From NCBI GenBank assembly GCA_002269645.1, contig NIVC01000460.1, positions 186,001-250,000 on the forward strand: a stretch of 64,000 bases of DNA. Direction: 5' to 3'. The notes below the pieces were generated by a model, which was not told where the DNA came from, searched no databases, and saw nothing but the letters and a program-made list of their open reading frames with translations. A program made the position numbers and the translations under genes. Below are positions 3,417-62,290 of the stretch, in pieces. Source of the stretch: Macrostomum lignano. Lineage: Eukaryota. The stretch's first letter is position 1. The number at the start of each line of letters is the position of its first letter.

Positions 3417-4250
3417 TCAAGGCTTGTACCGTATAAAAGCGGTGGGGCCGCTCCTAGCGTAGCAAACATCGCACAGCCATTCGGCGAAGATCTCCTGACG
3501 CAGCATGCGCCAAGCGTCCGTAGTCAGCTGAGTGCACGCCCGATGGTACCAGTACTTGCACGACGCCTCGCACTGGATGCTCTCGTCTGTGTCGGCAATT
3601 TCAAATCGACAAGCGCCGCACAGAAATACGACTGGAGCGTTGACGCTGCCGCCGGTGTACAGCATCGCCGGCTGGCCCGGGTGCGGGTGCGGGTGCGGCG
3701 GCATCGGCTGCTGACGCCGGTGCTGCAGCTGCTGCTGTTGAGGCCCGTGAGGGTACTCCATAGCTGGGCCCGGCCCGTAGGCCACCCCAGCGGGTGGTCC
3801 ACCGGCAAGGTTGCCGCTGCTGCCTCCTCCGCCGCCACCGCCAGAGGCTGCCGCTGCTGCAGCCGCCGCGGCCGCCGCTGCCGCTGCTGCAGCCGCCGCG
3901 TGACCGTTGTGCTGGCTGGGATATCGAGGCGGCTGCTGCTGCATCATCATCATCTGCTGTTGCTGCTGCGGATGCGTCGGCGGCATCATGGGAGGTCCGC
4001 CAGGCGGCAGGTGTTGATGGGGCAGCGGTGGTGGCGGCTGCTGCTGCTGCTGACCCGGCGGAGGCGGCGGCGGGCCGCCCGGATGTCCACCTGGTGCAGC
4101 GGCGGCGGCGGCGGCGGCTGCTGCGGCGGCTGCCTGGTGAGCAGCGGCGCTGGCGACTGGCATTGCTTTATGGGCAACGAGAAGAACTCGACAAGTAAAA
4201 AATGCGAACTTAGCGACTGGTGCTGAGGCGATGCGGCTGAAAAATGGCAT
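3417..4250 (-). CDS. PYGO: Pygopus-like protein: Ala/Pro/Gln-rich N-terminus and C-terminal Pygo-type PHD finger. Likely start at ATG 4163 (MPVAS) or on an unseen upstream exon.
   Basis: VFLCGACRFEIADTDESIQCEASCKYWYHRACTQLTTDAWRMLRQEIFAEWLCDVC aligns with the Pygo PHD pattern YPCG.C..EVNDDQDAILCEASCQKWFHRICTGMTE.AY.LL..E..AVWGCD.C; the PHD is C-terminal as in Pygo. Confidence 0.85.
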   Translation of the reverse strand: MPFFSRIASAPVAKFAFFTCRVLLVAHKAMPVASAAAHQAAAAAAAAAAAAAPGGHPGGPPPPPPGQQQQQPPPPLPHQHLPPGGPPMMPPTHPQQQQQMMMMQQQPPRYPSQHNGHAAAAAAAAAAAAAAAAAASGGGGGGGSSGNLAGGPPAGVAYGPGPAMEYPHGPQQQQLQHRRQQPMPPHPHPHPGQPAMLYTGGSVNAPVVFLCGACRFEIADTDESIQCEASCKYWYHRACTQLTTDAWRMLRQEIFAEWLCDVCYARSGPTAFIRYKP

Positions 4251-12329: not shown

Positions 12330-15150
12330 AGCGGATTTATTACACTGCTGATATGTCTGTTTCAGTTTGCATAACTGTTTTAGCTATTCATGACTTCATA
12401 TATTTTAGCTACACCAGTGAGCTCTTTTCTGACTCTTTTTTCATTTGTAGCATATCCTAACTTGTGTACTTGCTTGTCATTCAAGAGGTACTGACAGAAG
12501 TATTTTTTTCTGATCTTTTCAGTTTGTGGACATTCGGTCAAGTAGTGTAGGATATCGGAACCATTTCTCGCTCCACACAGTCTACATGCTTCATGAGAGA
12601 AAATGTTGGGTGTAATTTTGCATTTCAGTTTTAGGAGGGTTGTTAGGAATTTTTTGTTTCTAAAAGTGCATGGAAAGTAATCTGAAAGGTCGGGCCTGCA
12701 GATTTTTTTGTAGAGATAGGCATTTTTGTAGAGTTTAATATGTTGCTGATTCTCTAGCTTTTGGCTAAGTTCTCTTTCTGTGTATCTTGAGGTGCTTTTT
12801 CACTAGGTATTTCTCGTTATTAAAGCTTTGGGAAAGTTTATCTTCAGTTAGTGCTTTTAAGTCTATACTTTCCAGTTTCTTTAGTACATTTGTTTTCCAT
12901 GGATTTTTTTGGCTGGTGTTTGAGTAGAAAATTTCTAGAGTCGTTTGGCTTTGGCAGAGTTTTTTGTGTCTAATCTTCAGCCAGTAGATGAGGTAGGTTT
13001 TAGCGATTCGTTGAGAGATTGGAGTAAGCTCAAGTTCTGATGATATCACCCTGTTGCTAGCAAATTTTGGTAGATTGAAGAGATATTTGTAGAATTTCAG
13101 CTGAATATTATCAATAGCTTTTGTATCAGACATGGTAGCCAGAGGGCCCCAGAGCTCACAACCGTAAGTGATAACGGGGGTAACAAGCGCGTCAAATAGT
13201 CTGCGAATGAGTGTGATATCTATGGACGTATTCTTTACCCTATGGAGTAGGGAAAACATGGCTGTATATCCCTGCTTAGTTTGGTGTTCAATACATTTTT
13301 AAAGCTGTTTTTTGGTTCAAAAATAATTCCCAGGTATTTAAATTCATTTACTTCTTCTATTTCTTGGTTGTCGTAGTATATTTTTGTAGCAATGCTATCT
13401 GTGTCGTTTTTTTGTCTGGTATTGCCCTGCATAAACTTTGTTTTGCTTGCGTTTACTTTCAAGTAATTTTGTTTGCAGTAATTTTCCATAGTCGTAAATG
13501 TGTCTTGAAGTTCGTCTTTGTTTTTAGCTAGAATGGCTTGATCGTCTGCAAAGAGTAGGATGAGTGGGAAAGCAGATCTCGTAAGAGAGCGCCTAGCGCT
13601 AGAGAGTTCAAGATATTCAACAATGTCGTCAATATATAGTTCAAAAAGAATGGTAGAGAGAGGGTTGCCTTGAAGAACACCTTTAGATATTGGGATTGCC
13701 TGGGTTTCATCATCATCATCATCTTTTTTTAGAATGAAGCAGGCATTTTTATGCATGTTCTTGATAAGTTCTATCATTTGACCTTTAATACCCTGATTAT
13801 CTGTTTTGCACCAAAGGGTCGGTTGATTTAAGCTATCGAAGGCTTTTTCATAGTCAACAAATCCAATAAAGAGTTCTTCTTTGTTGTAGATGGATTGGTT
13901 TATAATGTTGTAAAGATTAAAACATTGGTCGATTGTGCTGTGATTGGGCTTGAAACCGTATTGGTATTTTGATATAAGATTGTTTGCGTATGCTAGGTTT
14001 TCGAGTCTGGATTTAATAATTTGGCAAAAGAGCTTGCCAAGAATTGGTTGAATGCAGATTCCTCTGTAATTGTTGGGGTTGGCACTGTTGCCTTTGTTTT
14101 TATAAATCGGATGAAGTGTATTTGTTATCCAACTAGTTGGGAAGGTTCCTTGTTTGAGTGCTTCGTTGAAAAGTGAGCATAGGAGGTCAGCAAGTTCGTT
14201 CTCGAGGTATTTGAGTGTTTCTACATATACTTTATTGTGCCCAGGTGCTTTGTCGGTTTTGAGCTTTTTGATATGTTTTATAACTTCTTCTTTGGTGAAT
14301 GGGGCATTGAAATCCTCTAAATCAGCCAGAATAGGGTTGTCAAGGTGAAGATTGTATGAGAGTCTAATGCTGCTGTCTTGTTCAGTTACAAGATTTTGAA
14401 AGTGTATGACAAATTTTTCATCAATTGTTACTCTGTTGTTTGAGGGATTTGGTGTTTTTAATAAGTTCCAAAGTTGTTTTGTATCGTTTTGAATAAAGGC
14501 CTGGTTGATCATGTTGTCTGCACAGAGAGTTGTTTCAAATTTCCATGAAGTGAGCTTTTTTTCGTATGCTTTTTTGAGTTGTACTTTGCTTGAGAGGTTG
14601 TTGGGAGTAGGGAAGGTTTTATATCTTCTGCAGGCATGTCTAGCAGCGTTTCTTAAATCTTTAAGGAAGCGAGGCAGTGTTGAGCATAGTGGGTTCTTTA
14701 TCTCTACTGTGATGTTGTTTTGAATTTGTCTAACTTTTCTACTTAATTCATTTATAAAAGCTGGGTTTTGTATGTCTAGATTTGTGATTTTGTCATGCAT
14801 GTTTTTCAGGTCATTTGCGAAGTTATTGATATGTTTTTCTTATTGCAGGTTGGGTTTATGTGACTTTTTTAGGACTCTGTATCTCGTTTTTGAGTTATTG
14901 GTTGCTTGTTTAGTTTCTGTGATTTCCTCTGTGAATTCACTTGATAAGGAGAGCACTATTTGGTTGTGGTCACTAAAGTAGGAGTGGTTCTTTACTTTAA
15001 AGTCTTCAAGGTGTTGGAGTAAGCTGGTAGAGACGAAACAGAGATCAATAACAGAAGAACCAGATTTTGAGAGAAAGGTGAATTCACCATTTGTGTCTGA
15101 TAGTGAATTATGTGAAATTTTATTTGTGTTAGTAATCAGCATTTTAGAAG
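12330..15150 (-). mobile_element. Decayed, 5'-truncated non-LTR retrotransposon (LINE) ORF2: end of APE endonuclease, RT, C-terminal CCHC knuckle
   Basis: Endonuclease end FTFLSKSGSSVIDL...SDH (14840-15142). RT motifs KAPG, NYRGI, QYGFK, FVDYEKAFDS, GVLQG.PLS..LF, LFADD, FKYLG (13235-14800). TYGCELWG (12765-13259). CRLC-x9-H-x4-C near 12530-12590. One in-frame stop at 14840 and several frameshifts. Confidence 0.93.
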
Positions 15151-23527: not shown

Positions 23528-23542
23528 ATCAGACAGACAGAC

Positions 23543-23599
<57 letters not shown>

Positions 23600-23666
23600 C
23601 AAACACAGACAGACAGACAGACAGACAGACAGAAAGAAAGACAGACAGACAGACAGGCAGGCAGTC

Positions 23667-23699
<33 letters not shown>

Positions 23700-24060
23700 G
23701 TCAGACAGGCAGAAAGACAGACAGACAGACAGACAGACAGGCAGAAAGACAGACAGACAGACAGACACATAAACACACAGACAGACAGACAGACACAGGC
23801 AGTCAGACAGGCAGACAGAAAGAAAGACAGACAGACAGACAGACAGGCAGTCAGACAGACAGACAGACAGACAGTCAGACAGGCAGAAAGACAGACAGAC
23901 AGACAGACAGACAGACAGTCAGACAGACAGACAGACAGAAAGACAGACAGACAGACAGTCAGACAGGCAGGCAGACAGACAGACACAGGCAGGCAGGCAG
24001 ACAGACACACAGACAGACAGACACAGGCAGGCAGGCAGGCAGACACAGTCACAGGCAGGC
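23528..24060. repeat. (GACA)n microsatellite with GGCA/GAAA variants
   Basis: Direct reading. Confidence 0.97.
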
Positions 24061-34410: not shown

Positions 34411-37400
34411 ACACCTCCAAATGACACGCACCTCAAACGCACTAGGAATCCAGCAGGGCTGGTTGCTTTGCAAATCGTCTCACCTTCAAGCTCATGCCAG
34501 ACTGCCCGTCAATGCTGTCAGATCTGTTTTTAGCAGCAGTTGCCATGGACTGTGTGTGCCGCTGGCCTCTTTGCTGTTGCTGTTGCTGCTGCTGCTGCTG
34601 TTGAGAAGATCTTCTCATCCTCAACCACAACAGCCCGACCAGAAACACCACAGCCAGAAGAGCCCCCAGCAAAGCCAGACAGACAATTAGAATTAAGCTT
34701 TTCTGGTACTGCTGCTGCTGCTGCTGCTGGTTGAACCGCCTGTCACTGTCCGAACGACCTCCACCGGCGAGGTCGAAGCGGCCTCGACCTGCCAGTTCGC
34801 TGCCGGAGTCGGTCGGCAGAGCCGGCAGCTGCCGTACGGCCACAGTGAGAACGGCGGCCGACCTCAGCTGAGGCGAGCCGTGATCGGCAGCCTCGATGAT
34901 CAGCGGGTAGCGGCCGCAGTTGGCTATGCTCAACTGCCTGGCCAGGGTGAGCTGTCCCGTGTCCGGGTGCAGGCTGAACAGACCGGCACTGTTGCCGCCC
35001 AGAAGGCGGAACTGGACCCTTGAATTGGACGTCTCCTCGTCAGCGTCTTTAGCCTGAAGGTCGGCCACTGGCGCCCCGGCAGCGTTGAAACAGGAGGTGT
35101 CCACGATCGTGGTGTTGTCGGAATTTGGGTAGATGAATCTTGGCGGATTGTCGTTCAGGTCAGTCACCTGCAGTTGTGCGGTTGCTAAGGCTTCAAAAAA
35201 TTGTGCGTAAGACGCAGAGGCATCCTAGGATACAAAATGGCATCGGATGTTTCAAAATGGCACACTACGATTCAAAATGGCGTTCCATGATTCAAAATGA
35301 CACTCAGTGGTTCGAAATGGCATTCCATGATTCAAAATGGCACCTGATGATTCAAAATGGCACCCATGATTCAAAATGGCACCCAGTGATTCAAAATGAC
35401 ACCCAGTGATTCAAAATGGTACTCTATGATTCAAAATGGCACTCAGTAATTCAAAATGACACCCAGTGATTCAAAATGGTACTCTATGATTCAAAATGGC
35501 ACCCAGTGATTCAAAATGGCATGTCATGATATTCAAAATGACACTCCAAGAAACAAATTCGCATCCATGGGATAACAAAGTGGCACCACCTGAATATTGA
35601 GTAACAACTCTGAATAAAATCTTTCTTTCAGAAACTCTTAAAAGTTCAAACATCCACTATTGCCACAGCCGCTACCCTACACCAGCTCTCGAATATTGGC
35701 TGGGTGTCCACTTGCATGCACCGAGCACACGCACAAAAAAAGTTTTCATTCCCTCATCGTCCACCCAGACTCCCTCCGTCTCCCCGGCATCACTCGTACT
35801 AACTCTGGAGCTCTCGCAGAATTTTATCAATTTTGCCAAGGCGTCTGCCTTCAGACTTGCTGTGAGAATCCTCACTTGCAGAGAGAACATATGAAGGCAT
35901 GAATTAAGTGGCAACCGCACATGCTTGGAATAGATTAACTGTCCCCGGGCTGACAGCTTTTTGCTTCTTCTAGGAGAGACAGGATTCGGCGGAAAAATTT
36001 CAATTTTGCCGCCTCTCTGAGCCGGTTAACTCCGGGGTCAAGAGCGACAGTTGAGGACAGCTCGGTTATCTGCTTGGTGACACAAATTGACAGAAATTAT
36101 CGACTGAGCTTTCCTGGGGCTGAGTATTTTTTGGAATTGTTGGTTTAAGAGAGAGGCGAGTTTGGTGAAGCACCTTCGAGGAAGCTGAAGGATTTGAAGA
36201 GTGATAACCAGTGAGACTGAAGAGTCTGAAGGATCAGGGGATGGTAACTAAGCCTGAAGGATCAGAAGGATCAGGGAGAGGATGGCAACTAAGCCTGAAG
36301 GATCTGAAGGATCAGGGAGAGGATGGTAACTAAGCCTGAAGGATCAGAAGGATCAGGGAGAGGATGGCAACTAAGCCTGAAGGATCTGAAGGATCAGGGA
36401 GAGGATGGTAACTAAGCCTGAAGGATCAGAAGGATCAGGGAGGGGGCGGCAACTAAGCCTGAAGGATCAGAAGGATCAGGGAGAGGATGGTAACTAAGCC
36501 TGAAGGATCAGAAGGATCAGGGAGGGGGCGGCAACTAAGCCTGAAGGATCAGAAGGATCAGGGAGAGGATGGCAACTAAGCCTGAAGGATCAGAAGGATC
36601 AGGGAGAGGATGGCAACTAAGCCTGAAGGATCTGAAGGATCTGGGAGGGGATGGCAACTAAGCCTGAAGGATCTGAAGGATCAGGGAGAGGATGGCAACT
36701 AAGCCTGAAGGATCTGAAGGATCTGCGAGGGGATATGGTAACTAAGCCTGAAGGATCTGAAGGATCTGCGAGGGGATATGGTAACTAAGCCTGAAGGATC
36801 TGAAGGATCTGCGAGGGGATATGGTAACTAAGCCTGAAGTATCTGAAGGATCAGGGAGGGGATATGGTAACTAAGCCTGAAGGATCTGAAGGATCTGCGA
36901 GGGGATATGGTAACTAAGCCTGAAGTGTCTGAAGGATCTGCGAGGGGATATGGTAACTAAGCCTGAAGTATCTGAAGGATCTGCGAGGGGATATGGTAAC
37001 TAAGCCTGAAGTATCTGAAGGATCTGCGAGGGGATATGGTAACTAAGCCTGAAGGATCCCACTAAAAAACTTAACCATAGCATGTATCACCTTTTAGATA
37101 ATTATCGGGATAATTTGCCGCTAAGCATGAGTCGATGGGAGGCTGGGGGAAAGTGTGAGAAATGTGACAGACTGCCTCTCCTAAAAGCAATAATCTGGTA
37201 GATCGTGACAGATAACAGACGAACAAATTTGCAATCATAATCTCAGGTGCTGGATGAGAGACGACCCGCTAGGAAGAGCCATAGGGGTCAGCTGCCACGT
37301 GGGGCGTGACTATCCAAATGAATTGGAGGGCTGCTGGGTGTGCTTCTCAATGAGCCCAGATGCAAAAAGCCAGCAGATTCCCAATCTTCATCACCTTCTC

Positions 37401-40553: not shown

Positions 40554-42950
40554 CAGTTAGTTAGTTAGTCAGTTAGTTAGTTATTTAGTTAGTTAGTTAG
40601 TCAGTTAGTTAGTTAGTTAGTCAGTTAGTCAGTTAGTTAGTCAGTTAGTCAGTTAGTTAGTTAGTCAGTTAGTTACGCACCCGCACGGAGCGGCAGCCTC
40701 AGGGCAGAAGCTCGGCGCATTGTCATTCTCGTCCAGAACTTGGACCACGATGTCCAGCGGTCGCGAAGTCTTGGCCGGTTCTCCGCTGTCCTTGGCCGAC
40801 ACTCGCAGCTGGTAGCTGGCCTCCTGCTCCCTGTCCAGGGTTTCCTTTGTCAGCAGCAGTCCGTTGCGCTCCCCCAGGCTGAACAATCGGCTGTGCGGTG
40901 TGTCCTCGAGAACATACGTCACCCCGTCTCCGTCAGCGTCCGTAGCGTTTAACTGGTGCACCGGAGCGCCTGGCGGCCGGTTCTCCACCACCCGCAGCGT
41001 CAGAATCGGCGTCGTCATTGTCGAACTCAAGCTGGTCGCCTCGGCGAACTCCGGCCGATTGTCATTGACGTTTCCGACTCGGATGGTCAGGCGGCGTTGA
41101 GTGACGAGCTCGGGCTCGCCGCCGTCTGAGCAATTCAGCAGCAGCTCGTGCTGCTTAGCGGCCTCTCTGTCTAACGGCCTGGCGGTTCGGAGCTCGAACT
41201 CGCGCTGCTGGCCGCGGCTGAGTCCGCCGCCGCCCGTTCGCGAGACCAACTGGAAGGATCGAAGAGACTCGGCGCCGCCCAAAAGGCTGCAGTCTAGTCG
41301 GCTGGGGCCACCGTCCGCGTCAGTCGCCGTTATCCAAGCCACCAGCTCGGCACCAGCTCCGTTTTCCATCACCTCAAGGTTGCCGGCTCCAACGTCTTCG
41401 GTTGCTGGCGTGACATCGATGACTGGCTGCTCGTCGTTCCGGTCCAGGACGCTGACGGTGACAGTGGCGCTTCCGGTCTGCGGCCCGACTCCGCTGGAGT
41501 CCCGCCTGCCGTCTCTGTCCACGGCCTCGAGGATGATTACGTGCACCGGCTGGTGCTCGTAGTCCAGCCGGCGGCGCAGGAACACGCCGCCAGTGGTCGG
41601 GTCGACGCTGAAGAAGCCGCCGACGCCTCCGACGCCACCGGCGACGCTGCTCAACCGGTAGCGAATCTGAGCGTTCAGTCCCTCGTCCGGGTCGGTTGCG
41701 TTCATTCTGATGAATACGGTGTTCAGCGGAAGGTCTTCCTGCACGTGGACCGTCATCTGTTTAAATGGGTTTTGTTGGTGTTCTTGCGCAACGAAGAAAT
41801 CAAAGCTGTACTACTTGTTTTCAACACTCTGATTGACCAGTGGGCGACATCCAAGCATTGAGAAAGCTTCCAACTTGTCCGCTACCTAAGGGCTACCGAG
41901 TGAGTGACCATCCACTTTCTGGACTCTCCGCGGAGGGCGACCGCACTGCGGACACCGGCACCACCGGATCTCCCCTGCCCAGCACAACAGCGCACAATAT
42001 TTAGGCCAACTTGACCGAAGCTACTGAGTGTCTGCGTTAGTTCGTAATTTGAAACAACGGCCCACCTGTTCCTTGGAAAATCGCGGCTTCTCATCGTTCC
42101 GATCGATCAGTCGGACGTCGATCTGCAACCGGCCGACCCGAGGCGGACTGCCGCCGTCCTTGGCCAGCAGTTCGAGCTTATGCCGAGCAACCTTCTCCCT
42201 GTCCAGCGGCCTCACCGCAATCAGCTTCGGCTGCAGTCTGCTGTCGCCCAGGCGAAAGTACGGAAGGTCGCCGTCCTGCTCTAGCGAGTACTCTTGCACA
42301 TTGAACGGCTCAGCGTCCAAGTCGACAGCCATGGGCAATTTGAACTCTTCGCCATCTTTCGGATGCTCGTCGATGTTTAGAATGAACTCCGCCTGGGGAA
42401 AGGTTGGCGCGTTGTCGTTCAAGTCGCGCACCCGGATGGCGACCTCCACCATCTGGCTGGCGTCCGGATTCACGGCGTCAATGACGCGAACTCGCAATGT
42501 CAACTCGCAGGCGTCAGTCGGCGATCGCGAATGCGCCCAGCCGGAGCGTCGACTCCGTCCTCTTCGGCGTCTCCGTTGGAGTCGGCTTCTGCGCGGCTGC
42601 CGACAGCAGCGCCGCACCAGGGTGCACATCCGGTCCCGGTCGAGGCTCACGTTTGGCGCCGTGCTGACCAGCCCGCTGTCCCCGTCCACTCTGAAGTACC
42701 GCAGGCCCGGCTCGCTGCTCGCCTGGCCCAGGCTGACGAACCGGGCGCCGCCCGGGCCTCCGACGGGAAGCCCCGGCTGGCCGGACAGCCGGCCGATTTC
42801 ACGTGGCCGAGCCGGCGGCTGCTCGCCTAAGTCTTCGTCTGTCTCGAAGGTGACTCGGATGGCGCCGCCGCTCGTTGTTGACAGCCACAGCGTTGACAGA
42901 AGTAGCAGCGCCGAGCCAGCGATGAAGCTGTTTGAGAGGCTGTAGGTCAT
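31310..42950 (-). CDS. Protocadherin with 7 cadherin repeats (delta1/Pcdh9-like architecture), ~1141 aa; exons 42950-42066, 41756-40681, 40234-39955, 35167-34484, 31957-31825, 31677-31310
   Basis: Signal peptide, then seven repeats with DRE/DRD, DxD and (D)xNDNxP motifs, a TM segment (LILIVCLALLGALLAVVFLVGLLWL) and a cytoplasmic tail ending SSSFV*. All five introns are GT..AG with matching phases (0,2,0,0,1); exon lengths sum to 3426 nt. The last two exons rest on splice and phase logic only and are less certain. Confidence 0.9.
32490..32850. repeat. Purine-rich minisatellite, ~16-bp unit (gagagtcagacaggaa)
   Basis: Tandem copies in protocadherin intron 4. Confidence 0.85.
33700..34410. repeat. 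Compound repeat: (CA)n interleaved with cctcagactcaaaatga
   Basis: More than 20 units of variable CA length. Confidence 0.95.
35250..35545. repeat. Minisatellite, ~20-bp unit (gattcaaaatggcacccagt)
   Basis: Tandem copies. Confidence 0.9.
36235..37056. repeat. Minisatellite, ~41-bp unit (aactaagcctgaaggatcagaaggatcagggagaggatggc)
   Basis: About 20 tandem copies with gradual unit drift. Confidence 0.95.
37838..38515. repeat. Minisatellite, 22/24-bp units (cagagtcactcatttggcgc[c/gct]a)
   Basis: About 30 tandem copies. Confidence 0.95.
38978..39930. repeat. Minisatellite of variable units built on gtgagttcatgagatcat
   Basis: Tandem variants running to within ~25 nt of the exon-3 donor. Confidence 0.93.
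40250..40674. repeat. (TTAG/TCAG)n microsatellite forming nearly all of protocadherin intron 2
   Basis: Direct reading; intron is 40235-40680. Confidence 0.97.
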
Positions 42951-43880
42951 TGACTCTGTCGTTGGTAGAAGCACTGTTGGTGCAATCTGTTGCCAATAGC
43001 TAGTCTTATAATTTGATTCGAATTCAGCACGGACTGGGTCTCACTGAGCTCCAACAACTGAACAAATTTATCGGCAATATCATTTGCCTCCTGTTGCTCG
43101 ACAAGCAATCCTTTCTTATAGATCCCTTCTCAACCCCCCTTGTGCTCACAAACCTTCTCAGCGAGTCTCCGCCAACCGGAGCAGTCGGGCTGGTTCCATT
43201 GGCTCTGGCCGGCACACACCGACACCGGTACACCTGCGCAGGTCACGTCTCAAAGGCATAAATTTCTGTAGCCAATTCGCGGGCAAGCAGGGCATTTCTT
43301 CTACTTTCTACTATTAAAAAACACTTCCCTGCGTGTAGCAAGCAGTTGCAGGCCCGGTTATTCAACTGAGGCCAAAATTGCTTTCCTTTTTTGCATTTCG
43401 GTAATAATAGCAAAGAAAATTAACTATTCCAAATATAGTAAAACTCTCAGCATTCCTCCTTTTCCCTCCCGCAAATGCTATCCAAACCAAATCGAGAAGC
43501 GAATTAGCGAAAATAAAGCTGAGTCACTTGGCCGGAACAGAGTCAATCAAAACCGAGTTTTTATTCGCTAAACTCCAGCTCGGTTTGATCTCAAATCAGG
43601 ACAGAGTCGCTTGAGAAATGAAAGACAATAGTTAGCAGTTTCACCCGGGAAAGAGGCTGGATGGGGAGGTGGGGCTGCGGACTCGCTCAGCAGGACTTCC
43701 GGCTGCGATTCGTCCGGCGCGTTGTTTAATTTGAGTTTTCCCGGGACACGAGAGGCAAACTCAAATAAGGGCTGCTCACGCGTGAGGGCGTGGAGACGGC
43801 TGGCTATGGTGTACTGTTTCAGTGCGCGTTTGCGATTTCGCAACTTTGAAGCCTCACCAGTTCATGAGATTTCACAACCT

Positions 43881-47258: not shown

Positions 47259-47805
<547 letters not shown>

Positions 47806-48324
47806 TCTATCTGTCCTATTCTATCGAGTCAGACCGCATTCTAAGAAAGAAGGCAGTCTCAGAGAAAGTTTTTTCCTATGCAGAAAAAGATATCTCTTTC
47901 AGATTTTATCTAGAAATATCCCCCCAGAAATTCTTCCCCGGGGATTCTGAGCCAAGATTGATAGCCAATATCCAGTTCTCAGGATTCATCTGCACCAGTT
48001 GGGCGTTGGGAACTGCAAAATTGGGAAAATTAGTCAAAATCTTTTCCCAATACTTTCTTCCCATCATACTAGGGATTTAAGCCGCGGGCTTGCAACCTCA
48101 AAGCGACGCGAATGTCGGCTTGAATTTCTAAAATCCATGAAAAATTATTTCTGATGCTGAATGGGATAAGGAGGTATTCGAACAAACTAGTTTTATCTCA
48201 GGGTTTTTTCTTTAGCCAATGAGGCTTAAAAATCTTATATTTTTATCATGACACTATTAACTGTCATGTTCACTAAATTGCTTGATCAATTTTTTAAGTT
48301 TTTTTATTGTTATTCCTCAGCCAC

Positions 48325-48775: not shown

Positions 48776-49967
48776 TGACCACTGAATCATAGTGTCATCA
48801 GCAGTCAATTTCGCTCGCTAGAAAATCAATTAAAAGTGAATTAATGGATCATTGGAATACAGTTTTCTGTTCAATTTCCTCATCTAAATTTTGTTTTAAT
48901 CAGTTTTGAGCAAGCGTTACATGTACTTTTATCGGTGTCTGCTCATTTCTAGAGACACGCCGAGTTCCATCTCAATGGCTTTGGTTATTCCCCAGCTGGA
49001 ATTGGTGTGCGGCAAGCCAGCTCGCGAGTGTAAACAGGAACTTCAGCCAATGTAGGATGCCAATCTCTCTCAGTCTGCGCGGAATCTGCAGCGGTCGAAA
49101 TTAGGACCGGGACTGGGGGGGGGGCTGGGCTGAGAAGTATTTATTCCCACGGGGATCGCTGCTGGGAATTAGTAAAACTGTATGCTGAGGGGCGTGAAGT
49201 GCTTGATTGCATTCTGTTTGCTGGGCTGCTATCAGTTGCAATTGCCATATATGCCGATTGCACCCGCCTCGCGATTGGCCTCAGACTGACGCTTGAGCAG
49301 AAAGTCAGCTCGGCTCTGAGTTCGCGTCAAAGGGGAACAAACTCTCTAGCTTAGGGAATCCAGTGAGTCAGGGGGGGGGGGAACAACACAGATCTTGCTG
49401 GCTTCTATAGATGCAAAGAGAGATCAGGTAGAGATCAGAGTGAGATTAGAGAGATCAGAGAGAGAAAATGCAACTCATACAGAGGTCATACAAAGGTCGT
49501 ACAGAGGTCATACAGAGGTCATACAGAGATAACACAGAGGTCATACAGAGATCATACAGAGGTCATAACAGAGACCATAAAGAGATTATACAGACGTCAC
49601 AGAGGAGACAGAGACCATAATCCCTAGGTTGCTAAATTGCAGTTCCTGACAGACAAGCAGATCAGCCTCTGCAGCAAGCGAAGAGTTTCAGTTTTGTTGC
49701 AAAGCACAAGAATGCAGGATTGCTTTAGAATTTTTGCGAGCATAAAATGTTTAACGACGAAAAATGAATGACAACTGAAGATGGGGAACAGAGTCAACAC
49801 AGGCCTGAAAGGATGCAGTTAGGTCGTTGCGAATGAGTAAGCAGCTGAGAATTTGAGGTTCTAAAAGAGATAATTGCAGTGAGGAAGATCCTAAGCTTCA
49901 CGAGGCCGTACAGCTTTAATTGACAAGAGGAGACAACTGCAGTCTACATGCGTGCAAGTTTGTTTGC

Positions 49968-51818
<1,851 letters not shown>

Positions 51819-53334: not shown

Positions 53335-54455
53335 TTAGAGGAGATGAGAGGAGATGAGTGAAGAGAGGAGAGGAGGGGAGAGGAGAGGAGAAAGAGGAGA
53401 GGAGGGGAGAGGAAAAGAGAGGAGAGGAGAGAGAGGAGCGGATAAGAGAGGAGAGGAAAGAGAAGAGAGAGAGAAGAGGAGAAGAGAGGAGAGGAAAGGA
53501 AAGGAGAGGAGAGGAGAGGAGAGGAGAAAAGAGGAGAAGAAAGAAGAGGAGAGCAGTGGAAAGAAAAGGAGAGGAGAAGAGAGGAGAGGAGAAAAGAGGA
53601 GAAGAAAGAAGAGGAGAGCAGTGGAAAGAAAAGGAGAGGAGAAGAGAGGAGAGGAGATGAGAAGAGATGAGATGTGAGGAGAGGAGAGGAGAGGAGAGGA
53701 GAAGAGATGAGAGGAGAGGAGAGGAGAGGAGAGGAGAGGAGAGGAGAGGAGAGGAGAGGAGAGGAGAGGAGAGGAGAGGAGAAGAGAGGAGAGGAGAGGA
53801 GAGGAGAGGAGAGAAGAGGAAAAGAGAGGAGAGGAGAAGAGATGAGAGGAGAGGAGAGGAGAAGAGAGGAGAGGAGAGGAGAGGAGAGGAGAGGAGAGGA
53901 GAGGAGAAGAGATGAGAGGAGAGGAGAGGAGAGGAGAGGAGAGGAGAGGAAAAGAGGAGAGGAGATGAGAGGAGAGGAGAGGAGAGGAGAAGAGATGAGA
54001 GGAGAGGAGAGGAGAGGAGAGGAGAGGAGAGGAGAGGAGAGGAGAGGAGGGAGAGGAGAGGAGAGGAGAGAGAGGAGAGAGAGGAGAGGAGAGAGAGGAG
54101 AGCGAGGAGAGAGAGAAGAGAGAGGAGAGGAGAGGAGAGGAGAGGAGAGGAGAGGAGGGGAGAGGAGAGGAGAGGAGAGGAGAGGAGAGGAGAGGAGAGG
54201 AGAGGAGGGGAGGGAGAGGAGAGGAGAGGAGAGGAGAGGAGAGGAGAGGAGAGGAGGAGAGGAGAGGAGAGGAGAGGAGAGGAGGAGAGGAGAGGAGAGG
54301 AGAGGAGAGGAGAGGAGAGGAGAGGAGAGGAGAGGAGAGGAGGGGTGAGGAGGGGAGAGGAGAGGAGAGGAGGGGAGAGAAGAGGAGGGGAGAGGAGAGA
54401 GAGGAGAGGAGAGGAGAGGAGGGGAGAGGAGAGGAGAGGAGAGGAGAGGAGAGCT
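53335..54455. repeat. (GGAGA)n purine-rich simple repeat
   Basis: Direct reading. Confidence 0.97.
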
Positions 54456-56870: not shown

Positions 56871-57297
56871 GATAGAGAAGCAGAGAAGTAGACAGCAATC
56901 CTGCAGTGCTGGAGAGTTTGCAGTCCAAGACAAATAAGATTATAAAAACTCTTCGAAGCTTTCAAATATATGCAGCGATCTCGACAAAGGAAATTAGCGA
57001 TCGAACAGAAGAAATTTGCTCGATATTAGCTAACTAGTATTTATTTTATCACTGGACAACCAGATTTCAAGTGTGAACAGGTTCGAATCTGTCTGCGGCT
57101 ACGCAAGGCTAAATGTTTTAGTTGATTCGATAATTTTTACACAGACAACCTTCGAAGTGCTTCGCTTTCAGCTCGCATTGGGCCAAGTAGATAGGACTGA
57201 GATAAGAGTTCGACAGAGGGACAGGCGCACAACCTTGATTCCGCTTCGCGACAACCTATTCATTGAGACAGCGTGTTGGCAGGCAGTTGACTCTGCT

Positions 57298-60011
57298 TTA
57301 GTTTTCATTGACGCTTCGCTTCTTGCGGTAGGAGCTGCGATAGTAGCGGCTGTAGTACTCGCCAAGCAGAGTGCCTAGGTCCTTCTCGTTCATCGAGCAG
57401 TCGGTCTTGCAGGAGCGGATGCTGGAGCCGCGGATGCCGAGGGCGGAGCTGACGCAGCACTGGCCTGGCGGGCAATCCGAGTCCACCTGGCAGTCGATGC
57501 GGCGTGGCATGCCGAAGTCGTAGTAGCGCGGCATCTCTCGCTCGCAGACGCCGCCGTATCCTGCGTAGTGTTTGATTGGTTGCTATTTTTAGCACATGAG
57601 GGTTTGTCCGACGAGTCGAGGGGGGGGGTTTAAACGCAGAATGCGTTTGATTGGTTGCCATTTTTAGCACTCCCTCGGCAGGGATACAAGTGAAAATCAC
57701 GGGCTCTTCTAATTGGTTGCTATTTTTAGCACTCCCTCGGCAGGGATAGAAGTGAAAATCACGGGCTCTTCTAATTGGTTGCTATTTTTAGCGTGGCAGG
57801 GCTACCCCTGGGCAAGGAAAATCTTTTTTGCTTGATTATATATTTAGAGCTCAACATTTTTTCTCCAGAAAGTAAAGTTTAGTGCTCAGTGTTTCTTTAA
57901 TTGGCTCGCTAATTTTATGCCCTCGCTAATTTAGATTTTTTAAAATGGAAACCCAATCAAAAGGTTCCCGATTATTGAATACTCGGAGCATTAAAAGTGC
58001 AAAATTACTGAGATATTCCATAAAATGGCCCATTGCAGTTCTCTACGTAAACACAAAACTTTCAGGCAAAAGTTGTCCGAGCCACTCAACAAACTGCATT
58101 TTATCCTTGGGATTCGAAATCCAATTCTGAGACCGGAAAACGGCGTCGCGCCCTTCCCAGTGCCACAATTTGATCAGCTTAAGGAGGCTTTAAAATCCCC
58201 TCCCCGATGGGACCTCAGAGTGCTGGGAATCGGCGACAGACGAGAAGGGAAGAGCGAGGATGAAGACTGGGAGACTCCCCGGTCTCATGGCAAACTTGGA
58301 ATATTCGATAAGGCTGGGGAACAGCCCGCTGGGGATTCTGACTTGGGGAAACGATTTCTCCTGCCGCACGGAACCTCAGCTTTCAATGCTTCTTTGTTGC
58401 CAAGTAGGGCGGAGAATCTTCTTTTCGGGGAACTGCTCAGAACTCTGCCATGTCCCCCCCCCACCCAACGAAATAAAATGCCACTTCTCGCGGCTGCTAA
58501 CTGAATTCTGGAGAAAGAGAATTTGATTGAGGGGAAAAATGGTTGATTTTATGGACCGGGCCGAGCTGGGCGCCTCATCAATTTTCAGCTCCCTGCTGCT
58601 GCTGGCTTCTTAGCCCGCCAGCAGGAATGCAAAATGAGGAGAGCTACAGTGGCGGCTCTTCTCCCCACAGAATAAAAATTGGCCAAGCAAAACAGAGAGA
58701 ACTGGCCCCTCATTGCGTGGCGCGGAAATGTTAAAAAAAGTCAGTGGCACAAGAAATTATGGCAAGAGATTTCTGGCAGCACTCTGGATGTGGCCGCTGA
58801 GCCAGCTGTGCAACATTTATTAACGAAGTTTTAAGTGGCAGCTTTTTTGGACCCAAAAATGCATGTGGATACTAAAAATAGACTTTATTGTAAATAGACA
58901 TCCGCGATGGAAGTCTGGGTGCATTGATGGGAACATATTGCAACGGTAGTCATGTGGTTTAAAAATATCCCCAAAAGAAGCGCTCCGTATGGGAAGCTTT
59001 TAGAATTGGTATATTTATTTTTGTCTCGGTTCCCGATGTTGGCTAGATTAGCAATCCATTCTATTCCTTCATCAGTGATGCTGGCTAGATTAGCAATCCA
59101 TTCTATTCCTTCATCAGTGATGTTGGCTAGATTAGCAATCCATTCTATTCCTTCATCAGTGATGTTGGCTAGATTAGCAATCCAATCTATTCCTTCATCA
59201 GTGATGTTGGCTAGATTAGCAATCCATTCTATTCCTTCATCAGTGATGGCTAGATTAGCAATCCATTCTATTCCTTCATCAGTGATGCTGGCTAGATTAG
59301 CAATCCATTATATTCCTTCATCAGTGATGCTGGCTAGATTAGCAATCCATTCTATTCCTTCATCAGTGATGGCTAGATTAGCAATCCATTCTACTCCTTC
59401 ATCAGTGATGCTGGCTAGATTAGCAATCCATTCTATTCCTTCATCAGTGATGCTGGCTAGATTAGCAATCCATTCTATTCCTTCATCAGTGATGTTGGCT
59501 AGATTAGCAATCCATTCTATTCCTTCATCAGTGATGTTGGCTAGATTAGCAATCCATTCTATTCCTTCATCAGTGATGGCTAGATTAGCAATCCATTCTA
59601 CTCCTTCATCAGTGATGCTGGCTAGATTAGCAATCCATTCTACTCCTTCATCAGTGTCACTCATCAGGGTCACTCACTCTTATAACCGTATCGGCAGACC
59701 AGGCCATCGCAGCACACCGTGTCCGAGTAGCAAAACGAGCCCTCAAAGCCGCACTAAAAAGGTGCAAAAAGGTGAAAATCGCAAATGACGAATATCGAAT
59801 ATCTTCAGCACACGCAGATCTCATCAGCGCAGAAACCGATATCAAATTTCAACGAATAGCTTATAGTTAGATCGAATATGATGATTCGATTGCAACTCAC
59901 GTTGCTATCTGAGCCGCCGCCCATGATCCTGATGAAGCCCGCAGCCTCCCTAGGACCCATGCTGATCGACAGGGCGACAGTCAGAGCAATCAAAATGGTT
60001 GCAGCTGTCAT
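57298..60011 (-). CDS. Secreted cysteine-rich peptide precursor, 149 aa (signal peptide, knottin/ICK-type domain, prokineticin/colipase-like domain, Tyr-rich tail); exons 60011-59901, 59753-59678, 57560-57298
   Basis: Both donors are GTGAGT; acceptors are tttttag and acgcag; phases 0 and 1 match; total 450 nt. Translation: MTAATILIALTVALSISMGPREAAGFIRIMGGGSDSN-CGFEGSFCYSDTVCCDGLVCRYGYK-RYGGVCEREMPRYYDFGMPRRIDCQVDSDCPPGQCCVSSALGIRGSSIRSCKTDCSMNEKDLGTLLGEYYSRYYRSSYRKKRSVNEN*. Confidence 0.82.
59035..59655. repeat. Intronic minisatellite, 42/39-bp unit (ggctagattagcaatccattctattccttcatcagtgatgct)
   Basis: About 15 copies in intron 2 of the peptide gene. Confidence 0.95.
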
Positions 60012-60344
60012 TTCGCTGCTTTGTTAAAATATGGAATTCAGGGAAAACTTTTTTAAGGTTGAAAAATAGTTTTCTTAGGATCGACTTGAACAGCTAGCGC
60101 GCCCTGGAGATGCCGCCGGGTCCCTGTTTTAGCTGACGAAATTGATGACTTCTTCAGCCGATCGACTAGATAGTGATTCTTTCCAGCGGCAGCCCGAGTG
60201 CAGAGGGTTTATACACCCACCGAGGCTGGGGTTCCTGACCAATGGGGAGAGGCCTCAGACTGGCTGGCAGTTTGAGGAGCTAGCTCGATCATTGGCAAAT
60301 TACATTTTGAGCATGAGCATGGGACTCTAACATCTTGAGACTCA

Positions 60345-62290
60345 TTATCATGAGAGTTGAGAATCAGACTTCAGTATCATGAGAGTCTAGCATCATGAGA
60401 GTTGAGAATCAGGAGACTTCAGTATCATGAGAGTTGAGAATCAGACTTCAGTATCATGAGAGTCTAGCATCATGAGAGTTGAGAATCAGGAGACTTCAGT
60501 ATCATGAGAGTTGAGAATCAGACTTCAGTATCATGAGAGTTGAGCATCAGGAGACTTCAGTATCATGAGAGTTAAGAGTCAGGAAACTTCAGTACCATGA
60601 GAGTTGAGAATCAGGAGACTTCAGTATCATGAGAGTTGAGAATCAGACTTCAGTATCATGAGAGTTGAGCATCAGGAGACTTCAGTATCATGAGAGTTAA
60701 GAGTCAGGAAACTTCAGTACCATGAGAGTTGAGAATCAGGAGACTTCAGTATCATGAGAGTTGAGCATCAGGAGACTTCAGTATCATGAGAGTTAAGAGT
60801 CAGGAAACTTCAGTACCATGAGAGTTGAGAATCAGGAGAGTTGAGCATCAGGAGACTTCAGTATCATGAGAGTTGAGCATCAGGAGACTTCAGTATCATG
60901 AGAGTTGAGCATCAGGAGACTTCAGTATCATGAGAGTCTAGCATCATGAGAGTTGAGCATCAGGAGACTTCAGTATCATGAGAGTCTAGCATCATGAGAG
61001 TCTAGCATCATGAGAGTCTAGCATCATGAGAGTCTAGCATCATGAGAGTTGAGCTTAAGGAGACTTCAGTATCATGAGAGTTGAGAATCAGGAGACTTCA
61101 GTATCATGAGAGTTGAGCATCAGGAGACTTCAGTATCATGAGAGTTGAGAATCAGGAGACTTCAGTACCATGAGAGTTGAGCATCAGGAGACTTCAGTAT
61201 CATGAGAGTTGAGAATCAGGAGACTTCAGTATCATGAGAGTTGAGCATCAGGAGACTTCAGTATCATGAGAGTTGAGAATCAGGAGACTTCAGTACCATG
61301 AGAGTTGAGAATCATGAGACTCAGTAAGTATCATGAGAGTTGGGAATCAGGAGACTTCAGTATCATGAGAGTTGAGAATCATGAGACTCAGTAAGTATCA
61401 TGAGAGTTGAGAATCAGGAGACTTCAGTATCATGAGAGTTGAGAATCATGAGACTTCAGTATCATGAGAGTTGAGAATCAAGAGACTTCAGTATCATGAG
61501 AGTCTAGCATCATGAGAGTTGAGCATCAGGAGACTTCAGTATCATGAGAGTCTAGCATCATGAGAGTCTAGCATCATGAGAGTCTAGCATCATGAGAGTC
61601 TAGCATCATGAGAGTCTAGCATCATGAGAGTTGAGCTTAAGGAGACTTCAGTATCATGAGAGTTGAGAATCAGGAGACTTCAGTATCATGAGAGTTGAGC
61701 ATCAGGAGACTTCAGTATCATGAGAGTTGAGAATCAGGAGACTTCAGTATCATGAGAGTTGAGCATCAAGAGACTTCAGTACCATGAGAGTTGAGAATCA
61801 TGAGACTCAGTAAGTATCATGAGAGTTGAGAATCAGGAGACTTCAGTATCATGAGAGTTGAGAATCATGAGACTCAGTAAGTATCATGAGAGTTGAGAAT
61901 CAGGAGACTTCAGTATCATGAGAGTTGAGAATCAGGAGACTTCAGTATCATGAGAGTTGAGAATCAGGAGACTTCAGTATCATGAGAGTTGAGAATCAGG
62001 AGACTTCAGTATCATGAGAGTTGAGCATCAAGAGACTCAGTACCCTGAGAGTCTATCATCATGAGACTTCAGTACCCTGAGAGTCTATCATCATGAGACT
62101 TCAGTACCCTGAGAGTCTATCATCATGAGACTTCAGTACCCTGAGAGTCTATCATCATGAGACTTCAGTACCCTGAGAGTCTATCATCATGAGACTTCAG
62201 TACCCTGAGAGTCTATCATCATGAGACTTTAAGAAACGGACACTTCTGTAACATAAGACTTCAGTAATATACACTTCAGTATCATGAGAC
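60345..62290. repeat. Minisatellite, ~32-bp unit (ggagacttcagtatcatgagagttgagaatca) with 13-bp sub-arrays, ~1.9 kb
   Basis: Tandem copies starting ~330 bp upstream of the peptide ATG. Confidence 0.96.

Follow-up and report, generated by a model that had tools for sequence, protein, structure and literature searches.

The described proteins that come closest to the product of Mlig005172, a three-exon gene of the flatworm Macrostomum lignano, are small secreted peptides of several kinds. The gene lies on the minus strand at 57298-60011 of a 64,000-nucleotide stretch of contig NIVC01000460.1 (assembly GCA_002269645.1, positions 186,001 to 250,000), and this whole stretch is called the window here. 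Inhibitor cystine knot (ICK) peptides, or knottins, such as those of spiders and phi-xibalbin3-Xt3a (PDB 7rz3), have six cysteines in the order C-C-CC-C-C with typical loops and a CC-x-G-L-x-C core. In the bivalent toxins DkTx, Hi1a and Xt3a a single secreted chain consists of two small disulfide-rich domains, which a short linker connects and which are tandem duplicates of one ICK domain. Prokineticins and their relatives (AVIT, MIT1, Bv8 and astakine; PF06607) have ten cysteines in a five-disulfide colipase fold and a short hydrophobic motif, AVITGA, at the mature N-terminus. In the processing of peptide precursors, a C-terminal RF-Gly, with or without a following basic residue, is a classical substrate of carboxypeptidase and peptidylglycine alpha-amidating monooxygenase (PAM), and RKKR is a site for furin or prohormone convertases. 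Ixodegrins are cysteine-rich tick salivary proteins whose defining motif is RGD or KGD; a prokineticin-like cysteine framework is present in many of them, and as of a 2012 review they had never been expressed (PMC3386632).

What is new in this study is a Macrostomum-restricted family with a conserved exon structure, in which a knottin-like domain is paired with an orphan six-cysteine domain, a conserved mature N-terminus and an RFamide-like tail processed in the style of a hormone. An earlier reading of this DNA from its letters alone (the sequence-only reading) had described the domain combination as one it did not recognize; the combination does indeed fall in no curated family, but the gene itself had already been annotated. 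The product most likely works in signalling between the worm's own cells, in the manner of a hormone, cytokine or neuropeptide, though this assignment is tentative and its probability falls somewhat short of even.

The three-exon gene is real and is confirmed to be present in GenBank as Mlig005172. In silico splicing gives a coding sequence of 450 nt (149 amino acids plus stop), and the three minus-strand exons with GTGAGT donors and matching phases put forward in the sequence-only reading were reproduced exactly. Along its entire length the product matches PAA53895.1, PAA74677.1 and PAA82649.1 with 100% identity. These proteins were deposited from M. lignano as 'hypothetical protein BOX15_Mlig005172g1/g2', and the 2714 bp of the gene in the window show no difference from the locus in NIVC01000460.1. 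When all GT/GC-AG models that reproduce the deposited proteins were searched exhaustively, one single model remained per locus. The gene had also been called hidden, which is true only of a prokaryote-style open reading frame (ORF) track, as its model was already in GenBank. Unspliced read-through of exon 2 ends at a stop after ...YGYKSE and contains only five cysteines.

Comparison with relatives leads to the same conclusion. A 925-nt contig from SRR28338164 (L001) holds an uninterrupted ORF for a 154-amino-acid protein that is 59% identical to the 149-amino-acid product, and it is colinear with the spliced window sequence over both junctions at 74.7% nucleotide identity. It carries a 5' untranslated region, a 3' untranslated region and an AATAAA, so it would appear to be a transcript from a related macrostomid. 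Both intron positions and phases are kept in the paralog groups Mlig031025, Mlig022787 and Mlig030832 (intron 1 in phase 0 before the first cysteine, intron 2 in phase 1 between the fifth and sixth cysteines), and exon 2 measures 76 nt in two of these three groups. The ratio of nonsynonymous to synonymous substitution (dN/dS, or omega; Nei-Gojobori method) between Mlig005172 and the SRR28338164 ortholog is 0.37 overall. Together with the identical deposited proteins, these observations establish the gene. A chance ORF or an annotation artefact could be argued from the older automatic models of the locus (P0002, 193 amino acids; P0004, 380 amino acids), which disagree with the 149-amino-acid model. 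However, these are mis-spliced or fused versions of Mlig005172, and the colinear transcript-like contig, the exon structure common to the four paralog groups and a dN/dS below 1 all speak against an artefact, which can be regarded as extremely improbable.

Mlig005172 also has a second genomic copy, on NIVC01000930.1, which differs mainly in the copy number of an intron minisatellite (26 copies at L002 10356-11474, against 15 in the window), and this copy number explains most of the 438-bp length gap between the two copies.

The precursor encoded by this gene was read earlier as a secreted two-domain protein, and the data support a secreted two-domain precursor with 12 cysteines. Its N-terminus is hydrophobic (Kyte-Doolittle mean of 2.84 over residues 6-16), as had been noted, and a signal peptide is predicted at about residues 1-25 with cleavage at ...EAAG|F. 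The motif FIRIMGG follows the predicted cleavage site and is conserved in the ortholog and the paralogs. The cysteines stand at residues 38, 45, 51, 52, 57 and 68 (domain 1) and at residues 86, 92, 97, 98, 113 and 117 (domain 2), and both cysteine patterns had been written correctly in the sequence-only reading, including the split of domain 1 across exons 2 and 3.

Domain 1 (residues 38-68) has the pattern C-x6-C-x5-CC-x4-C-x10-C, and its six-cysteine framework is conserved in the ortholog and in all paralogs. A profile of this domain matched 18 PDB sequences at E<=10, and 18 of 18 were of the knottin type (spider toxins, tachystatins, a sea-anemone peptide and SHL-I). The remipede double-ICK toxin Xt3a ranked first (E = 7.2e-5, two repeats summed), ahead of AMS3 (E = 0.0098), and BLASTP gives 47-50% identity between domain 1 and each of the Xt3a repeats in a stretch of 30 amino acids. 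These profile matches bear out the knottin framework that had been assigned to the domain by eye, and domain 1 is knottin-like by its sequence. No curated toxin or knottin family in Pfam scored above its gathering score, and only sub-threshold matches were seen (the best with Conotoxin_I2 at 0.017 and Toxin_12 at 0.011). Domain 1 shares with ICK peptides the cysteine order, the typical loops and the CC-x-G-L-x-C core, but it differs from them in being split by a phase-1 intron between its fifth and sixth cysteines and in being fused to an unrelated second cysteine domain and a processed tail; its knot is a putative one. Likewise, Mlig005172 resembles the bivalent toxins in having two small disulfide-rich domains and a short linker in one secreted chain, whereas no relationship between its two domains is detectable. 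A double knottin that arose by internal duplication of domains 1 and 2 was considered and rejected (hhalign probability 0.9%, E = 0.061).

A dibasic KR occurs at residues 62-63 (59680-59678 / 57560-57559), within the final loop of domain 1 (GYKRYGG). The ortholog keeps it, and Mlig031025 has one in the corresponding position (WQYKRSISG). Intron 2 interrupts its Arg codon. A cut at this site would yield a product of two chains linked by disulfides.

Domain 2 (residues 86-117) has the pattern C-x5-C-x4-CC-x14-C-x3-C, with six cysteines in every family member. The sequence-only reading had compared this domain with the N-terminal half of prokineticins and had proposed a search with the Pfam Prokineticin family. 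That search produced no match at E<=10 in any of five family members, although the speed filters of HMMER discard most matches poorer than an E of about 0.1, so that very weak ones could have escaped. No Pfam family at all reached its cutoff in any of the five members, and the recurrent sub-threshold matches were to Conotoxin_I2, Toxin_12, Dickkopf_N and WAP. Domain 2 alone matched nothing significantly in the PDB (0.042 for both an oryzain granulin-like chain and a hydrophobin). Since matches of this kind also extend to Dickkopf_N, WAP and the granulin-like chain, the cysteine motif of domain 2 is generic. An hhalign comparison with a hand-typed four-sequence prokineticin alignment gave P values of 0.8-1.2e-3 and a probability of 19-24% over columns 4-45, which cover the first to sixth cysteines. 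In this alignment the first six prokineticin cysteines fall on those of domain 2, including a C-x-x-D-x-x-C-x-x-G-x-CC and an R-G stretch.

The resemblance of domain 2 to prokineticin appears real but is at best weak. A prokineticin assignment fails, as domain 2 has six of the ten cysteines, lies internally, lacks AVITGA and has no Pfam match. With six cysteines against ten, the full five-disulfide colipase fold is impossible. If the prokineticin pairings were kept, C1 would pair with C4 and C2 with C5, and the orphaned C3 and C6 might then pair with each other, which would amount to a knottin-type pattern. The prokineticin AVITGA and the FIRIMGG of Mlig005172 are alike in concept, both being short hydrophobic motifs at the mature N-terminus.

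A profile of the whole protein matched a tick 'putative secreted salivary protein' (PDB 2ndi) at E = 0.24 over the domain 2 cysteine layout (C-x5-C-x4-CC-x14-C...C), but this similarity is not significant, and no paper on PDB 2NDI was found. Ixodegrins and Mlig005172 are both short, secreted and cysteine-rich and share a prokineticin-like cysteine motif, though there is no RGD or KGD anywhere in Mlig005172 (which has IRGSS) or in its paralogs. The UniRef name for the 149-amino-acid protein is 'Ixodegrin protein', and UniRef clusters that are at least 90% identical bear the clashing names Ixodegrin, WAP, Calglandulin, Prokineticin domain, ITG-like peptide, Disintegrin and CC domain. Because near-identical sequences are named in seven different ways, these names are automatic guesses and were rejected as evidence.

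The family itself is small. A HMMER profile search of 1.84 billion cluster representatives found only four true relatives and no homologs outside Macrostomum, and a profile word search through 5.8 billion proteins turned up nothing more than variants of these relatives and the SRR28338164 ortholog. Apart from that ortholog, all family members are from M. lignano. The sole other HMMER match, a 3142-amino-acid repeat protein (P0006), was spurious, and P0020 is a frameshifted model of Mlig030832. The relatives thus appear to form an uncharacterized secreted family of at least four paralog groups, so far seen only in Macrostomum. The architecture is fixed throughout: a signal peptide with a small residue at position -1, a mature N-terminus, the six-cysteine domain 1, a variable linker, the six-cysteine domain 2 and a tail with a YY motif. 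The mature N-terminus occurs as FIRIMGG, YLRLMGG, FSGIVSGG and FIGTLGG, with [FY][IL]R[IL]MGG as its conserved form, and domain 2 begins with C-x-x-[DN]-x-D-C-P-x3-CC. The paralogs are on separate contigs with no tandem array, and none is found within the 64-kb window. No paper was found that mentions Mlig005172 or the paralog identifiers, and literature searches on Macrostomum with knottin, prokineticin or toxin, and on flatworm cystine-knot toxins, returned nothing relevant.

AlphaFold2 gave a mean predicted local distance difference test score (pLDDT) of 47 with a two-sequence alignment, an unusable model, and 58 with five sequences. In the five-sequence model, domain 1 scored 70-77 with a beta-hairpin at 55-59/66-70, domain 2 scored 62-76 and also contained a beta-hairpin, and the tail was a low-confidence helix. 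Foldseek found no match in the PDB at E<0.001. Its top ranks, dominated by ICK toxins but none of them significant, were Magi4, Pmu1a, Pm1b and PcTx1, the double-ICK toxins Xt3a, Hi1a and DkTx, and also Dkk1 CRD2 and draxin; the ICK toxins among them had TM-scores of 0.6-0.74 on the target.

The end of the tail bears processing signals of the prohormone type. Mlig005172 ends in ...YYRSSYRKKRSVNEN, Mlig031025/019154 in ...NYYPRRFGR-stop, Mlig022787 in ...QYYSAMMRKRFG-stop (...RKRFG-stop) and Mlig030832 in ...QYYSGLFR-stop. A Gly amidation signal thus follows RF in the paralogs Mlig022787 and Mlig031025. In the ortholog pair LGEYYxRYYRxSYRKKRS is conserved. Conservation covers RKKR and 17 residues ahead of it, and the sequence that follows RKKR diverges, which fits a discarded C-terminal propeptide. 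The two paralogs that end in RF-Gly(-Arg), with a YY motif in a predicted helix upstream, recall RFamide and neuropeptide F (NPF)-type peptides. Insect agatoxin-like peptides and flatworm NPFs share with the family a signal peptide, a convertase site and an Arg before the C-terminal aromatic residue. Unlike amidated peptide hormones, Mlig005172 has no cleavage site upstream of its tail, so the tail would stay attached to the cysteine-rich body. The tails alone matched no Pfam family at E<=10, and hence no curated hormone family. An NPY/NPF-like tail was without Pfam support and is kept only as speculation.

It is proposed that the precursor would enter the endoplasmic reticulum, where the signal peptide would be cleaved before Phe26 and six disulfides would form. 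A protease of the furin or prohormone-convertase type may then cut after RKKR144 and a carboxypeptidase may trim the basic residues, and the paralogs would be amidated to ...RF-NH2. A stable product of about 115-120 amino acids would be released and, as an extracellular ligand, could bind to a receptor or ion channel at the membrane. Prokineticin/astakine and the insect agatoxin-like peptides bear a conceptual resemblance to such an endogenous ligand.

Rates of change along the protein bear on this proposal. Against the ortholog the signal peptide is identical at 7 of 25 residues (omega 0.72), whereas the N-terminus plus domain 1 is identical at 35 of 44 (omega 0.14) and the tail has an omega of 0.21; domain 2 and the linker evolve faster (omega about 0.7). 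A diverged signal peptide with a constrained mature region is the reverse of the pattern in conotoxin and venom genes. M. lignano grazes, and is cultured, on diatoms. Its neuronal PC2 homolog is essential for development, and knock-down of this gene is lethal (PMC4490696). The endogenous ligand is favored because of this contrast in rates, the amidation signals of the paralogs, the neuronal PC2, the dispersed single-copy loci and the diatom diet, though none of these observations is decisive. Several points count against it. The selection argument is weakened by its reliance on a single species pair with a dS of about 0.75 and on very short segments, and the rate of domain 2 does not show the constraint seen in domain 1. 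The end of Mlig005172 itself (...SSY-RKKR-SVNEN) lacks a Gly amidation signal, and the predicted structure has low overall confidence (pLDDT 58) with no Foldseek match at E<0.001. No expression, localization or peptide data were found. A family confined to one genus fits fast-evolving effectors or reproductive proteins better than conserved hormones. Finally, venom peptides too often have amidation and convertase sites, so the same processing signals are compatible with a toxin.

Of the readings that compete with an endogenous ligand, an exogenous toxin, among the roles put forward in the sequence-only reading, is less likely than the endogenous ligand but deserves some weight. Such a toxin would be secreted by glands of the pharynx or epidermis, and its knottin domain would block or modulate ion channels in prey, predators or competitors. 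Domain 1 is closest to arthropod venom ICK peptides and double-ICK toxins, amidated C-termini and propeptide cleavage are familiar from venoms, and the family is lineage-restricted. However, conservation is higher in the mature region than in the signal peptide, the genes form no tandem array, no curated toxin family was reached, an intron interrupts the knot domain, and the ICK fold is also found in non-toxin hormones and antimicrobial peptides. M. lignano is moreover a diatom grazer and is not known to have a venom apparatus. Slightly less likely than a toxin is a reproductive protein, secreted from the prostate into seminal fluid or from female-tract glands and acting on the mating partner. 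Small, secreted, cysteine-rich, genus-restricted and unannotated products are typical of the prostate-limited transcripts described from M. lignano, and the faster domain 2 and linker would suit such a role, but purifying selection is clear on domain 1, the N-terminus and the tail, and the amidation signals of the paralogs suggest a regulated neuroendocrine-type pathway, though not exclusively.

A more specific form of the endogenous ligand is somewhat more doubtful than the reproductive reading. It holds that these proteins are Macrostomum-specific chimeric ligands, in which a protease-resistant scaffold made of a knottin and a truncated prokineticin-like domain would present FIRIMGG, used as AVITGA is, and an RFamide/NPF-like tail to a G protein-coupled receptor. 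An antimicrobial or chitin-binding defence peptide of the mucus or epidermis, like the ICK-fold tachystatins, is the least probable of these functional readings and is judged improbable. Domain 1 has weak profile matches to tachystatins A, B1 and B2 (E = 0.3-0.9), and the protein is basic and rich in Tyr and Arg. These matches are not significant, however, and are weaker than those to toxins, and a conserved N-terminal motif and a processed tail are not tachystatin features. An endogenous ligand is retained as the preferred reading.

The outcome matters in different ways. A splice model read by eye can match a deposited model of a eukaryotic gene exactly, and the analysis defines an uncharacterized, apparently genus-restricted secreted family in a tractable flatworm in which RNA interference, in situ hybridization and transgenesis are available. 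If the proteins are endogenous ligands, they would be a flatworm example of non-venom knottins and possibly part of a new receptor-ligand pair. If they are exogenous effectors, they could be early peptide toxins of free-living flatworms, none of which was found described in a limited literature search. Neither outcome would overturn current concepts.

Table. Layout of Mlig005172 and its flanking signals, in window coordinates.
Feature	Position	Strand	Details
TATAAA, possible core promoter element	60208-60213	-	about 200 nt upstream of the ATG; putative
Exon 1	60011-59901	-	111 nt; ATG start; amino acids 1-37; donor GTGAGT; signal peptide and mature N-terminus
Intron 1	59754-59900	-	147 nt; phase 0; GTGAGT...TTTTAG; directly before domain 1 Cys1
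Exon 2	59753-59678	-	76 nt; amino acids 38-62 plus 1 nt; acceptor TTTTAG, donor GTGAGT; domain 1 Cys1-Cys5
Intron 2	57561-59677	-	2117 nt; phase 1; GTGAGT...ACGCAG; splits the Arg63 codon, between Cys5 and Cys6
Exon 3	57560-57298	-	263 nt including TAA (57298-57300); acceptor ACGCAG; Cys6, linker, domain 2 and tail
Domain 1 Cys6 codon	57544-57546	-	in exon 3
Domain 2	57397-57492	-	amino acids 86-117; six-Cys module CQVDSDCPPGQCCVSSALGIRGSSIRSCKTDC
Tyr-rich tail, predicted helical	57316-57396	-	amino acids 118-144; ends in RKKR (57316-57327)
SVNEN after RKKR	57301-57315	-	probable discarded C-terminal propeptide
AATAAA, probable poly(A) signal	57040-57045	-	253 nt after the stop; the ortholog contig has an AATAAA at a similar distance

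Repeats are found in and around the gene. The minisatellite of intron 2 occupies 59035-59656 in the window and has a unit of 42-44 bp in 15 copies. A second, 62-bp unit is repeated 2.3 times at 57650-57792 with 97% identity, and more copies of its core, 'GCTAAAAATAGCAACCAAT', extend to the acceptor of exon 3; this repeat could represent a short element, dispersed or tandem, from which the branch point and acceptor region come. Upstream, a 32-bp minisatellite of about 59 copies (60337-62212, 1.9 kb) begins about 125 bp from the putative TATA box. ORFs in the introns and on the opposite strand had no Pfam match, and no Rfam family was detected there, so no nested gene or non-coding RNA was found.

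Three ORFs on the minus strand match Pfam Cadherin (34442-35167, E = 1.7e-16; 40665-41756, E = 3.6e-47; 42021-42974, E = 1.6e-09) and are probably exons of one large cadherin/FAT-like gene on the same strand, downstream of Mlig005172. A 521-amino-acid ORF at 13235-14800 on the minus strand contains a reverse transcriptase domain (RVT_1, E = 2.5e-31) and lies in an AT-rich block at 10-20 kb; because this region is only 30-35% GC, the ORF is probably part of a retroelement insertion. Another minus-strand ORF, at 3417-4250, matches a PHD finger at the borderline (E = 4.1e-05, equal to the gathering score) and possibly belongs to another gene as an exon. Past the end of the window, the neighboring called genes on the upstream side of Mlig005172 encode a QVR (quiver/Ly6-like) protein and a 188-amino-acid protein with a faint Med26 match (L003 1-981 and 2015-2578). 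The two also flank the second genomic copy (L002), which fits a duplication of the whole region.

The window as a whole is very dense in micro- and minisatellites, with arrays at 49967-51818, 53337-54453, 47259-47825 and 23530-24045 and about 20 others. Examples are CTAACTAA (x231), AGAGG (x227) and ATCT (x142), along with many units of 20-50 bp in 10-50 copies. These arrays give rise to long spurious ORFs on both strands and to extreme values of GC skew.

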